From the NCBI GenBank assembly GCA_965112155.1, contig OZ218104.1: a stretch of 64,000 bases of DNA. The stretch is one strand, 5' to 3'. Of this stretch, positions 9,726 to 13,681 are shown piece by piece. The position numbers and the translations under genes were made by a program. Below the pieces are notes generated by a model. It saw only the letters and a list, made by a program, of their open reading frames with translations. It was not told the DNA's origin and did no database searches. Each line of letters opens with the position of its first letter. Position 1 is the first letter of the stretch. This DNA is from Podarcis liolepis (lineage: Eukaryota).

Positions 9726-12647
9726 TCAGAGCACTCCTGACATATGGTTGTCAAGCCTCTGCTTAAAGACCTCCAAAGTAGGAGACTCCACCACACTCCT
9801 TGGCAGCAAATTCCACTGTCGAACAGCTCTTACTGTCAGGAAGTTCTTCCTAATGTTTAGGTGGAATCTTCTTTCTTGTAGTTTGGATCCATTGCTCCGT
9901 GTCCGCTTCTCTGGAGCAGCAGAAAACAACCTTTCTCCCTCCTCTATGTGACATCCTTTTATATATTTGAACATGGCTATCATATCACCCCTTAACCTCC
10001 TCTTCTCCAGGCTAAACATGCCCAGCTCCCTTAGCCGTTCCTCATAAGGCATCGTTTCCAGGCCTTTGACCATTTTGGTTGCCCTCCTCTGGACACATTC
10101 CAGTTTGTCAGTGTCCTTCTTGAATTGTGGTGCCCAGAACTGGACACAGTACTCCAGGTGAGGTCTGACCAGAGCAGAATACAGTGGCACTATTACTTCC
10201 CTTGATCTAGATGCTATGCTCCTATTGATGCAGCCCAGAATTGCATTGGCTTTTTTAGCTGCCGCGTCACACTGTTGGCTCATGTCAAGTTTGTGGTCAA
10301 CCAAGACTCCTAGATCCTTTTCACATGTACTGCTCTCAAGCCAGGTGTCACCCATCTTGTATTTGTGCCTCTCATTTTTTTTGCCCAAGTGCAATACTTT
10401 ACATTTCTCCCTGTTAAAATTCATCTTGTTTGCTTTTGCCCAGTTCTCTAATCTGTCAAGGTCGTTTTGAAGTGTGATCCTGTCCTCTGGGGTGTTAGCC
10501 ACCCCTCCCAGTTTGGTGTCATCTGCAAATTTGATCAGGATGCCCTTGAGTCCATCATCCAAGTCGTTGATAAAGATGTTGAATAAGACCGGGCCCAAGA
10601 CAGAACCTTGTGGCACCCCACTAGTCACTCTTCTCCAGGATGAAGAGGAACCATTGATGAGCACCCTTTGGGTTCGGTCAGTCAGCCAGTTACAAATCCA
10701 CTGAGTGGTAGCATAGTCAAGACCGCATTTTACCAGCTTCTTTACAAGAATATCATGGGGCACCTTGTCAAATGCCTTGCTGAAATCAAGGTAGGCTACA
10801 TCCACTGCGTTCCCTTCATCTACCAGGCTTGTAATTCTGTCAAAAAACGAGATCAGGTTAGTCTGACATGACTTATTTTTCAGAAATCCATGCTGACTGT
10901 TGGTGATCACAGCATTCCTTTCTAGGTGCTCACAGACTGTTTGCTTAATGATCTGCTCCAGAATCTTCCCTGGTATTGATGTCAGACTGACTGGGCGGTA
11001 ATTATTTGGGTCCTCTCTTTTCCCCTTTTTGAAAATAGGGACAACATTTGCCCTCCTCCAGTCTGCCGGGACTTCGCCTGTTCTCCAGGAATTCTCAAAG
11101 ATGACTGCCAGTGGTTCTGAGATCACATCTGCCAGTTCTTTTAATACTCTTGGATGCAGTTCATCTGGCCCTGGAGACTTGAATACATCTAAACTAGCCA
11201 AGTATTCTTGTACTATCTCCTTAGTTATTCTGGGCTGTGTTTCCTCTGCTGAATCATTTGCTCCAAATTCTTCAGGTCGGGCATTGTTTCCTTTATCGGA
11301 GAAGACTGAGGCAAAGAAGGCATTGAGGAGTTCAGCCCTTTCTGTGTCCCCTGTTTGCATTTCACCATCTTCTCCTCTGAGTGACCCCACTGTTTCTTTG
11401 TTCTTCCTTTTGCTACGAACATACCCATAAAAGCCTTTTTTGTTGCTTTTAACCTCTCTAGCAAGCCTGAGTTCATTCTGTGCTTTAGCTTTTCTGACTT
11501 TGTGTCTACACGTGCTGGCTATTTGTTTGAATTCCTCTTTGGTGGTTTCCCCCCTTTTCCATTTTTTGTACACATCCTTTTTTAATCTTAACTCAGTTAA
11601 AAGTTCTTTAGATAGCCACCCTGGCTTCTTTAAGCACCTTCCATGTTTCCGTCTCATTGGTATTGCCTGACGTTGTGCTTTTACTATCTCCCTCTTAACA
11701 AACTCCCAGCCATCATGAACTCCCTTTCCTTTTAGTATTACTGTCCATGGGATCTCACCCAGCACTTCCCTAAGTTTTATGAAGTCGGCTTTCTTAAAGT
11801 CAAGAAATTGAGTCCTAGTATGCTTGGCTGCTCCTTTCCGCTGTATAGTAAACTTCAGAAGAGCATGATCACTCGCGCCTAATGATCCTTCCACTTCTAC
11901 CCCACTAACCAGGTCATCAACATTGGTTAGGACCAGATCTAAAATGGCTGTTCCTCTTGTTGCTTCTCTCACTTTCTGGACAATGAAGTTGTCTGCAAGG
12001 CCAGTGAGGAATCTGTTTGACCTTATGCTCTTGGCTGAGTTTGGCATCCAACAAATATCCGAGTAATTGAAGTCCCCCATTACTACTATCTCCCTTCCTT
12101 TTGCATGCTTGGCCATCTGTTCCAGGAAGGCATCATCTATGTCCTCCGTTTGGCTTGGGGATCTATAGTAAACTCCCACAATGAGGTCTCTGTTATTCTT
12201 CTCTCCCTTAATTTTGACCCAAATGCTCTCACTTTGGCTTTGAGGTTCTAAATCTTGGATTTCTTCACAGGTATACACATCCCTGACATATAACGCCACT
12301 CCTCCTCCTTTCTTGTCTGGTCTGTTTCTCTGAAATAGATTGTATCCCCCCATTATTACATTCCAATCATGGGACTTATCCCACCAGGTTTCAGTGATGC
12401 CTATTATGTCATATTTAGTTTGCTGTACCAAGAGCTCAAGCTCATCTTGTTTATTTCCCATGCTTTGCGCATTAGTGTACAGACATTGAAGTCCATTAAT
12501 CATTCCCCCGTGTCTCTTATTTAAGGATTTTTTCCTCCCACCACTAGGTCTGCGTGCTGCTTGCTCCATTTGGTCTATGACATTTGGATGATCATCTTCA
12601 TCAATTGATAGACTCCTACCTTCAGGAGCACTGTCTCCCTCCCCCAC
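9726..12647 (-). CDS. CR1 ORF2 protein: apurinic-like endonuclease + reverse transcriptase
   Basis: 973-codon uninterrupted frame. APE motifs [39 protein letters not shown] motifs [39 protein letters not shown]. The track start is a GTG; the first in-frame ATG is at 12569. Confidence 0.97.
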
Positions 12648-12652
12648 ATTAG

Positions 12653-13681
12653 TCAGTTTAAAGCCCTTCTGATGAGGTTTCTGAGATTTTTGGCAAAAAC
12701 ATTTCTCCCAACCGTTGTGAGGTGCAGCCCATCGCTTGCCAGAAGTCCATCTGCAAGAAACTGCAGTCCGTGATCTAAGAATCCAAACCGTTCCTGTTTA
12801 CACCATTTGCGAAGCCAGCTGTTCACTTCCACTATTTTTTCCTCCCTCCCTGGGCCACGTCGTTTAAGTGGGAGGACAGATGAGATGACTATTTGTGCAT
12901 TTAGTTGCTTCAATTTCCTGCCGAGAGCCTCGTAGTCTCTTTTGATCTTCTGGAGGCTATTGCTTGCAGTGTCATTGGTTCCCACATGAACCAAGAGGAA
13001 GGGGTATTTGTCAGTGGGTTTTATGATTCCTTGCAGTCGTTCAGTTACATCTTGGATCTTAGCCCCGGGGAGACAGCACACTTCCCGAGACATCTTGTCA
13101 GGCCCACAGATCACTGCTTCTGTTCCCCTCAGTAGGGAATCCCCTATCACCACTACACGCCTCCTCTTAGGTTTGGTCGGGGTTCTTCCGTGAGCTGTCC
13201 GTTCCAAGATCGCCTGCACATTCCCTGAAGACTGACTTTGCTGCTCGTCTTCATATACCTGATTGACTGTAATGAGGGAGAGATCCTCAAATGGAGTCTG
13301 CTCTTCGTCTTCCATGTTAGGGGAGAGGACCTCAAAGCGATTGTGTATTTCTAAACAATCAGAGCGAACCCTGGGCCTCCTACTTCTTTGAGTCACGTTT
13401 CTCCATATATCTGGCTCCTGTGTTGGTGAACTAGCCTCCTTCTCAGGGGAGTCCCCTGTCTCCTCCTTGGTGGAGACGGTGTGCTCTGTTGCTTCCAAGA
13501 AGAGCTCCAGCTCTCTAATTCTTTGGAGCGTAGCTACACGTTCCTCCAGTTGCTGGACTTTGTCTTTTAGGAGGGCAATCAACATGCAATTGCTGCAGGT
13601 AAAGCTGCCTGCAACCTTTGGCAAGATGGCAAACATTGCGCAGGAACCGCAGGCGACTGCAGCTGTTCCCTCCCCCTCCAT
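12653..13681 (-). CDS. CR1 ORF1 protein: N-terminal CxxC..CxxC zinc finger, coiled coil, SGNH/GDSL esterase domain
   Basis: 342 aa from the ATG at 13681 (strong Kozak context, AAGATGG). CGSC...CSNC, then the heptad region [19 protein letters not shown]. Esterase blocks [25 protein letters not shown]. Confidence 0.93.

Follow-up and report, generated by a model that had tools for sequence, protein, structure and literature searches.

A candidate -1 ribosomal frameshift signal at the ORF1-ORF2 junction of CR1 retrotransposons, conserved in lizard, bird-like and annelid elements

Analysis of a 64,000-nucleotide stretch of Podarcis liolepis DNA (contig OZ218104.1, assembly GCA_965112155.1; hereafter the window) revealed a CR1 element on the minus strand whose ORF1 ends in a slippery heptamer and whose ORF2 lies in the -1 frame. 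Comparison with related elements suggested that this junction is fairly likely to be a conserved -1 programmed ribosomal frameshift signal yielding an ORF1-ORF2 fusion, and that in CR1 elements the reverse transcriptase is probably produced via ribosomal frameshifting, as part of a fusion protein. It has long been a question how LINEs translate ORF2 from their bicistronic RNA; in the models accepted for L1 and SART1, ORF2p is a protein of its own. The retention of a slippery heptamer beside the ORF1 stop in lizards, birds and an annelid points to a different solution.

ORF1 of the lizard element (12656-13681, minus strand) extends from Met at 13681 to Asn at 12656 and encodes 342 amino acids ending in RRALN. 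In the ORF1 alignment, its N-terminus shows a CxxC...CxxC motif followed by a coiled-coil-like, heptad-like stretch, and its C-terminal part (about 12707-13075, minus strand) contains an SGNH/GDSL esterase domain (Pfam PF13472, E=1.4e-9). The closest proteins are from Podarcis muralis (94%) and Zootoca (81%), and ORF1 also matched the esterase of ZfL2-1 ORF1p (PDB 4c1b, E=2.4e-22). The ORF2 reading frame, which is -1 relative to ORF1, has 978 open codons from the TTT of the heptamer (9729-12662, minus strand) and is closed by a stop codon at 9726-9728 (minus strand). Within it, Pfam placed an APE endonuclease domain (Exo_endo_phos, PF03372, E=1.3e-16; about 11865-12473, minus strand) ahead of a reverse transcriptase domain (RVT_1, PF00078, E=1.8e-34; about 10377-11027, minus strand). 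From the similarity of its ORF1 to bird, turtle and lizard CR1-type proteins, the element would be a CR1-group LINE with an esterase-type ORF1. The original prediction of a zinc finger-coiled coil-esterase-APE-RT make-up is in line with these domains and motifs, and its estimate of a ~1318-amino acid fusion agrees with the sum of the two parts (342 + 976 = 1318).

Read on the minus strand, ORF1 ends AGG GCT TTA AAC TGA, with AAC at 12658-12656. The heptamer T TTA AAC (12656-12662, minus strand) is in X XXY YYZ phase in the ORF1 frame (codons GCT TTA AAC), it directly adjoins the ORF1 stop TGA (12653-12655, minus strand), and it is the sole in-phase XXXYYYZ within the entire lizard ORF1. The -1 frame at the junction reads TTT AAA CTG ACT AAT GTG GGG GAG and is open to 9729. 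Direct reading therefore confirmed both the in-phase heptamer with its adjoining stop and the long open -1 frame carrying APE and RT, as had been claimed. Stop-codon readthrough was rejected, because the zero frame after UGA meets another stop 26 codons on.

We compared 91 junctions, comprising that of the window, about 80 from bird-like CR1 copies and 10 from vestimentiferan tube-worm copies. The bird-like copies came from a host-contaminated metagenome, the host of which was called bird-like by similarity to penguin and pelican ORF1. TTTAAAC was kept at the end of ORF1 in 76 of the 91 junctions, including lizard, bird-like and annelid elements, with the qualification that most related copies are decayed and come from just two contaminated assemblies, such that independence amounts to about 8-10 lineages and not to 91 copies. 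A stop directly follows the heptamer in 74 of these 76 (TAG 59, TGA 13, TAA 2). Bird-like ORF1s are 32-52% identical to the lizard ORF1, yet they end in GCT TTA AAC followed by TAG or TGA, and most of these copies carry APE in the -1 frame. The tube-worm elements are CR1-like, with 91-96% identity to proteins of Ridgeia piscesae; their ORF1, only ~25-36% identical to the lizard ORF1, ends in TTT TTA AAC TAG or TAT TTA AAC TAG, and ORF2 is at -1 here too. In the best-preserved copies of every lineage, ORF2 was at -1 and open from the heptamer to the APE domain, and three lineages retained intact -1 ORFs counted from the heptamer (window, 978 codons; L078, 953; L081, 962). The ALN* ending, named in the original prediction as common among amniote CR1 ORF1s, proved to be more widespread, occurring in lizards, snakes, turtles, frogs, birds, a shark and an annelid; for turtles, frogs, snakes and the shark, this was read from protein sequences. 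Nothing was found in a scan of viral contigs.

The peptide encoded in the -1 frame right after the heptamer is also conserved (FKLxxKGEGD..RLA in bird-like copies, with a lizard counterpart), and its differences are synonymous, which indicates, as judged from the coding pattern, translation in the -1 frame. A codon-position test of the spacer in this frame gave slightly more variation at third positions (0.40 vs 0.31), a weak difference between decayed copies. Several esterase-APE 'fusions' present in databases (P0039, P0072, P0120, P0154 and P0187) were found to be products of predictor-invented introns or mutated copies and were not used as evidence of frameshifting.

On the 3' side, the sole conserved features were the adjoining stop and a G-tract. 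In the lizard element, the G-rich tract GGGGGAGGGAG (12635-12645, minus strand) begins 10 nt after the heptamer and encodes part of V-G-E-G-D in the -1 frame; the first GGGG begins exactly 10 nt 3' of the heptamer in 60/76 junctions, annelid lineage included. A duplex search upstream and downstream detected no consistent pairing partner for this tract (z about 0). On inspection, a G-quadruplex is unlikely as a general explanation, as most lineages have two G-tracts only. A weak hairpin, CTCCT-GAAGGT-AGGAG (12613-12628, minus strand), is located about 28 nt after the heptamer, and bird-like lineages have a weak hairpin at a comparable place (GGCTC/GAGCC; -3 kcal/mol consensus with one compensatory pair, RNAalifold, 11 junctions). 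A hairpin at about +28 is too weak and too distant for a classical stimulator. Among nested folds (RNAalifold and single-sequence folding), no conserved stable stem-loop was found 5-9 nt downstream. Downstream MFE z-scores in seven lineages were +1.6, +1.6, +1.3, -2.2, +0.5, -1.0 and -0.4, single-sequence folds being no more stable than shuffles in six of the seven, and an Rfam search of the junction matched no frameshift element. The caveat attached to the original prediction, that only weak hairpins and no classical stimulator were visible, thus remained in force.

The main rival explanation is that a separate ORF2p is produced by termination-reinitiation, or by AUG-independent initiation just past the ORF1 stop, with UUUAAAC-stop and the G-tract acting as a reinitiation signal. 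Accepted models of LINE ORF2 translation, as presented in the relevant sections of PMC3708506 and PMC5009743, are of such a kind, and the lack of a classical frameshift-stimulating structure is also in its favor. In the lizard element, a TAA at 12798-12800 (minus strand) closes the ORF2 frame upstream, and the 45 codons from there to the heptamer contain no AUG. Past the heptamer, an AUG first occurs 31 codons downstream (Met27; 12567-12569, minus strand) and again 53 codons downstream (Met49; 12501-12503, minus strand), each a possible reinitiation site; translation of the -1 frame agreed with the earlier statement that ORF2 has no AUG before 12569. In two bird-like lineages, a stop closes the -1 frame just 1-2 codons upstream of the heptamer. 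Together with the missing AUGs, these near-upstream stops confine entry into the ORF2 frame to the heptamer region. L078 and L019 have an AUG 4 codons past the heptamer and P0354 has one directly before the G-run, positions that fit reinitiation, and near-cognate starts (GUG, AAG, UUG) often precede the G-run. However, a restart AUG close to the ORF1 stop is absent in the window, in most bird-like copies and in all annelid copies, and in many lineages the stretch from the heptamer to the N-A-R-S motif of APE is free of AUGs, leaving none able to start a functional ORF2. In the annelid and some bird-like lineages, moreover, the G-run is preceded by CAG or TCG, neither of them near-cognate. Reinitiation also leaves unexplained the perfect in-phase X XXY YYZ, the fixed TTA and AAC codons and the third-position T before a variable residue. 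Thus, we regard this explanation as unlikely, if still the one to be taken most seriously beside frameshifting.

It could also be argued that leaky scanning or reinitiation lets the lizard ORF2 begin at an AUG of its own, at 12569 or 12503, and that the heptamer is an inherited, unused relic. Both AUGs precede the APE catalytic motif, such that the reservation about Met27 and Met49 in the original prediction still applies to the lizard copy, and Podarcis gene models begin at the equivalent Met (P0349-P0353). However, these models are automatic, and the first lizard AUG is not conserved elsewhere, with no AUG at all ahead of the APE motif in many bird-like copies and in the annelid copies. A scanning ribosome would be unlikely to pass the 342 codons and several AUGs of ORF1, and a relic is difficult to reconcile with a young, fully open lizard copy in which heptamer, stop and G-tract are all intact. 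We consider a start at these AUGs quite improbable.

Another possibility is that the bases are conserved merely via a required Ala-Leu-Asn C-terminus of ORF1p, with the same codons retained by chance or descent. The LN ending is indeed invariant at the protein level across all lineages. However, in ten lineage representatives the terminal Leu was TTA in 10/10 and Asn was AAC in 10/10, whereas other invariant Leu columns in the same comparison used 3-5 codons and TTA made up a minority (4-31%) of Leu codons in the compared ORF1s. The preceding codon varies in amino acid (GCT Ala, TCT Ser, TTT Phe, TAT Tyr, GAT Asp), but its third base is always T. Among 77 distinct '..LN' protein tails, a residue without any NNT codon occurred at -3 in 2 only, both Glu; for comparison, K/Q/E/M occurred at -4 in 21/77. 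At 25-50% identity between lineages, the flanking synonymous sites have reached saturation. In addition, the homologous ZfL2-1 esterase (PDB 4c1b) extends just two residues beyond its counterpart of R339 in the alignment, so ALN is dispensable for the fold. A constraint on the protein terminus is therefore highly improbable as the cause. The heptamer was conserved at synonymous positions over deeply diverged CR1-group lineages, as anticipated, and on this comparative evidence its occurrence at the end of ORF1 is not due to chance. ZfL2-1-type L2 ORF1s have no LN at the end, which we counted against the frameshift reading; retrotransposition of ZfL2-1 is reported to depend only weakly on ORF1. 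Finally, loss of one base at TTTAAA by transcriptional slippage or editing, for which short homopolymers are present but nothing direct speaks, can be dismissed almost entirely, as the T3 and A3 runs are far shorter than the known transcriptional slippage sites reviewed in PMC5009743.

The -1 frameshift interpretation was supported by every comparative test that we ran of those put forward with the original prediction, the claim being a computational one. From the heptamer and its phase, the adjoining stop, the -1 position of ORF2, their conservation and the lack of AUGs, we infer how slippage might proceed. Ribosomes translating ORF1 would arrive at U UUA AAC, where tRNA-Leu would occupy the P site and tRNA-Asn the A site. 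The majority would decode on, meet the adjoining UGA or UAG and release ORF1p, with its zinc finger, coiled coil and esterase. A minority would slip back one base to UUU AAA, read CUG or CUA next and go on through ORF2, generating an ORF1p-ORF2p fusion of about 1318 amino acids in the lizard copy. This would set a low ORF2p:ORF1p ratio from a single RNA. Candidate stimulators are the adjoining stop codon and, 10 nt downstream, the linear G-tract. It is also conceivable that a single tRNA slips, peptidyl-tRNA-Asn moving from AAC to AAA with the stop waiting in the A site.

If ORF2 is translated in this way, CR1, the group of retrotransposons that dominates in most non-mammalian vertebrates, may follow a retrovirus-like Gag-Pol strategy to make an esterase-endonuclease-RT fusion. 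Models of CR1 ribonucleoprotein assembly, cis-preference and ORF1p:ORF2p stoichiometry would then change, and a large, ancient class of cellular -1 frameshift sites, apparently without a classical RNA structure, would be added to those known. The junction is a short, well-defined sequence that is directly testable in reporters. A broader scheme, which we offer tentatively and think doubtful as a whole, is that LN*-type CR1-group LINEs from annelids to amniotes make ORF2 mainly or only as an ORF1p-ORF2p fusion, through a -1 frameshift at U UUA AAC-stop that needs no RNA structure. The stimulus would come from the linear G-tract at a distance of 10 nt, via a bound trans-acting factor, possibly the element's own ORF1p, and the outcome would be autoregulated stoichiometry and built-in cis-preference; sister families with an ORF1 ending in QGN* or SKN* might likewise use G GGA AAC and A AAA AAC. 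We found no description of a CR1 frameshift site in the literature covered, which included targeted reading of Atkins 2016, Odon 2013, Metcalfe & Casane 2014, Schneider 2013, Suh 2014 and a 2026 CR1-group survey; key CR1 papers of 1997-2003 were outside this scope.

The proposed arrangement resembles that of retroviral and LTR-retrotransposon gag-pol, where a structural or accessory first ORF is likewise fused to a -1-frame polymerase ORF at X XXY YYZ and frameshifting sets a low Pol:Gag ratio. Examples of such sites are A AAU UUA in Rous sarcoma virus, which is followed by the gag UAG, U UUU UUA in HIV-1 and G GGA AAC in PEG10. As in CR1, the zero-frame stop of Rous sarcoma virus abuts the heptamer. 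However, CR1 belongs to the non-LTR LINEs and lacks a protease that could cleave a fusion, its first ORF is an esterase protein and not a capsid, and no stem-loop or pseudoknot was detectable among the nested folds examined. The CR1 heptamer is identical to the U UUA AAC used between ORF1a and ORF1b by coronaviruses and PRRSV, and the few ELN* tails among CR1 ORF1s would give G UUA AAC, the site of equine arteritis virus. In nidoviruses, however, frameshifting requires a pseudoknot a few nt downstream and the stop is not adjacent, whereas in CR1 the stop is immediate and no such structure was found.

With regard to the G-tract, protein-stimulated frameshifting provides a possible parallel. A C-rich motif 11 nt downstream of the PRRSV nsp2TF site is bound by nsp1beta/PCBP, and cardiovirus 2B* frameshifting depends on a 2A-bound element 13-14 nt downstream. 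The CR1 tract is likewise a conserved, apparently unstructured element at a fixed spacing of ~10 nt from the shift site, but differs in being G-rich; by analogy, it might act in a similar way. Frameshift stimulators 12-15 nt downstream are mentioned in the Atkins review (PMC5009743).

Among non-LTR retrotransposons, recoding has likewise been proposed from ORF arrangement, with frameshifting suggested for Drosophila HeT-A gag (in a passage of PMC5009743) and +1 frameshifting or reinitiation for Paramecium LINEs (PMC5405496). These cases concern other clades and shift directions, and no heptamer conserved across phyla was described for them. Human L1 and SART1 face the same problem as CR1, namely that one RNA carries a second ORF behind the first almost or entirely without a spacer; according to the relevant sections of PMC3708506 and PMC5009743, AUG-independent termination/reinitiation has been proposed for L1 ORF2 and UAAUG translational coupling shown for SART1. 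In both, ORF2p is made separately and a conserved slippery heptamer is missing, whereas CR1 has ORF2 at -1, often with no AUG, behind an in-phase heptamer.

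On the minus strand of the window, ORF1 of the CR1 copy was found by reading-frame translation to run from Met at 13681 to Asn at 12656, followed by a stop at 12655-12653 (junction AGG GCT TTA AAC TGA CTA ATG TGG GGG AGG GAG). The heptamer T TTA AAC (12662-12656) is in X XXY YYZ phase relative to ORF1, adjoins the TGA and is the sole in-phase XXXYYYZ sequence in this ORF. From the heptamer, the -1 frame reads TTT AAA CTG ACT AAT GTG GGG and remains open for 978 codons, to 9729. Upstream, it is closed by a TAA at 12800-12798, with no AUG in the 45 codons between this stop and the heptamer, and a frame scan placed its first AUGs 3' of the heptamer at 12569 and 12503. 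Pfam domains were a GDSL/SGNH esterase in ORF1 and Exo_endo_phos and RVT_1 in ORF2; the proteins nearest to ORF1 were from Podarcis muralis (94%) and Zootoca vivipara (81%). The sequence statements of the original prediction, including the position and phase of the heptamer, the long open -1 frame and the lack of an ORF2 AUG before 12569, were all correct, and its proposal that a -1 programmed ribosomal frameshift joins the two ORFs is supported by comparative evidence.

Related loci were found with ORF1 alignment, using search patterns far from the junction, and the junction sequences are therefore free of search bias. A metagenome scan yielded 80 loci, nearly all from one host-contaminated sample, with ORF1s most similar to those of CR1 in penguin and pelican (up to 80%). 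A genome scan yielded 12 loci, 11 of which were eukaryotic contigs within a MAG labeled Metamycoplasmataceae; their ORF1s matched tube worm (Ridgeia piscesae) proteins at 91–96% identity, and annelid and lizard ORF1s shared only ~25–36% identity. ORF1 of at least five bird-like sublineages ended in GCT (or TCT, GAT) TTA AAC and then TAG or TGA, with the APE domain in the -1 frame. Annelid ORF1s ended in TTT TTA AAC TAG or TAT TTA AAC TAG, with ORF2 likewise at -1, so that the predicted frame relationship held in both groups. The exact heptamer was present in 76 of 91 junctions, the stop being immediately next in 74 of the 76, and the codon before Leu always ended in T (GCT 63, TTT 9, TCT 2, GAT 1, TAT 1). 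Among ten lineage representatives, the terminal Leu was TTA and the Asn was AAC in every case (10/10 each); five other invariant Leu/Gly columns used 2–5 codons each, and TTA accounted for only 4–31% of Leu codons in the lineage ORF1s. Thus, the heptamer is fixed at synonymous positions among diverged CR1s, as had been anticipated. Copies inside one lineage are not independent and the effective sample is roughly 8–10 lineages, but flanking synonymous sites are saturated across these, which makes chance retention of the heptamer very unlikely.

At least 11 contigs of the Metamycoplasmataceae-labeled MAG (L081-L086 and L088-L092; CBDHHR0100...; 11–33 kb) carry CR1-like LINEs, and the similarity of their ORF1s to R. 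piscesae indicates that they are host DNA that ended up in a bacterial bin. In addition, a 753-bp Labedella endophytica scaffold (L087) contains a fragment of a tube-worm-type CR1 ORF1. Almost all of the 445 CR1 ORF1 matches (mostly L001-L080) came from one JGI metagenome, Ga0065711, in which several diverged bird-like CR1 sublineages point to heavy archosaur host-DNA contamination; the host is probably avian. None of the contigs appeared to be human, and masked N stretches played no part.

The comparative sequence data suggest that a conserved -1 programmed frameshift joining CR1 ORF1 and ORF2 is the best explanation, and we consider it fairly probable. Slippage would occur in tandem on the nidovirus heptamer U UUA AAC. 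The main alternative is that ORF2p is made by termination-reinitiation, or by AUG-independent initiation as in human L1, which is the accepted LINE model (PMC5009743, PMC3708506). Consistent with this model, the lizard copy has AUGs downstream of the heptamer, and an AUG lies right by the G-run that follows the heptamer in two related loci (L078, L019) and one retrieved protein (P0354). However, reinitiation leaves a perfect, in-phase, synonymously fixed heptamer unexplained. In two bird-like lineages, a stop closes the -1 frame just one or two codons 5' of TTT AAA, so that the ORF2 frame can be entered only at the heptamer or 3' of it. Annelid elements and many bird-like copies lack any AUG in the stretch from the heptamer to N-A-(R/Q)-S, the APE motif with the catalytic Asn, and an ORF2p initiated at an AUG in these copies would miss part of the active site. 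The -1-frame peptide right after the heptamer is conserved in bird-like lineages (FKLxxKGEGD..RLA(R/S)xEP) and has a counterpart in the lizard, with synonymous differences (GAG/GAA, GGA/GGG, GAC/GAT), pointing to translation of this stretch in the ORF2 frame. Intact natural -1 ORFs from the heptamer also occurred in L078 (953 codons) and L081 (962 codons). ORF2 spacers of 39, 66, 78 and 97 codons were observed among diverged bird-like sublineages.

At the protein level, almost every complete ORF1 homolog, from lizards, snakes, turtles, dendrobatid frogs and birds, ended in ALN or at least LN, in agreement with the predicted usual amniote ending. Leu342 and Asn343 were invariant in a 24-sequence alignment, even in members at 25% identity. 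A pure protein constraint on the ORF1 C-terminus is nevertheless disfavored: in the esterase structure of ZfL2-1 ORF1p (PDB 4c1b), the chain ends two residues past the R339-aligned position, and the ALN residues are thus dispensable for the esterase fold. Many more LN tails emerged when 1.84 billion representatives were searched with a profile and when a second word search was run; among them were EQYLN, RCGLN, QKHLN, KVRYLN and SKHSLN, and a sawshark protein ended in GEELN. LN ended 175 of the 347 retrieved proteins (77 distinct tails). The residue before Leu (A25, Y14, T8, F7, C4, S4, V4, H3, G3, E2, N2, L1) has an NNT codon in every tail except the two with Glu, as expected if the third base of this codon must be U; for comparison, K, Q, E or M occupied the -4 position in 21 of the 77. 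Glu would yield G UUA AAC, the equine arteritis virus shift site. Stop-codon readthrough and transcriptional slippage are also disfavored. P0032, P0049, P0055, P0065, P0071, P0074, P0083 and P0095 are publicly annotated as host genes or viral proteins (NUBP1, HAUS7, beta-parvin, 'Replicase polyprotein 1a', PAF acetylhydrolase, SOX-5-like); each is either a fragment of a CR1 ORF1 esterase or a chimeric gene model that includes such a fragment.

No conserved stable RNA structure was found near the junction by RNAalifold, MFE z-scores or Rfam, the last giving no match. RNAalifold on 11 bird-like junctions gave only a 7-pair hairpin ~28 nt downstream (-3 kcal/mol, one compensatory pair), similar in position to the lizard CTCCT/AGGAG hairpin and in keeping with the earlier caveat that downstream hairpins are weak; z-scores for the 110 nt downstream were >=0 in most lineages. 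The two conserved 3' features are the adjoining stop and a G-run (12645-12635, minus strand), which lies at an equivalent position from annelid to lizard, its first GGGG being exactly 10 nt past the heptamer in 60 of 76 junctions, with annelid ones among them. No sequence on either side paired with it consistently, and a general G-quadruplex is unlikely because G-tracts were too few. By analogy with protein-dependent sites, the G-run may stimulate slippage as a linear element at the mRNA entrance; it may also be a trace of a Gly-rich linker in the fusion, or both.

Not all esterase-type LINEs carry the signal, since ZfL2-1-type L2 ORF1s end without LN. These (PDB 4c1b; P0318, P0341) stop a few residues earlier, e.g. 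...NVLYK, and the sole experimentally studied esterase-type LINE, ZfL2-1, thus seems to lack it. Other esterase ORF1s form a QGN-ending family (P0296, P0334, P0344) and an SKN-ending family (P0342, P0345, P0346). The coding sequence could be G GGA AAC for the first tail and A AAA AAC for the second, each a further canonical slippery heptamer.

HeT-A, TART and L1 are the only non-LTR elements covered by the frameshifting review (PMC5009743). We found no description of a CR1 frameshift site in this review and the CR1/ORF1 literature covered, which extends to papers other than the original CR1 reports of 1997–2003; it is probable, but not certain, that the site was undescribed before. The novelty lies in the host, which is a group of non-LTR LINEs spanning phyla; the apparent absence of a classical stimulator is also unusual. 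The heptamer is the same as in nidoviruses and the mechanism would be ordinary tandem slippage. The purpose would be like that of retroviral Gag-Pol; the RSV shift site likewise abuts the gag stop.
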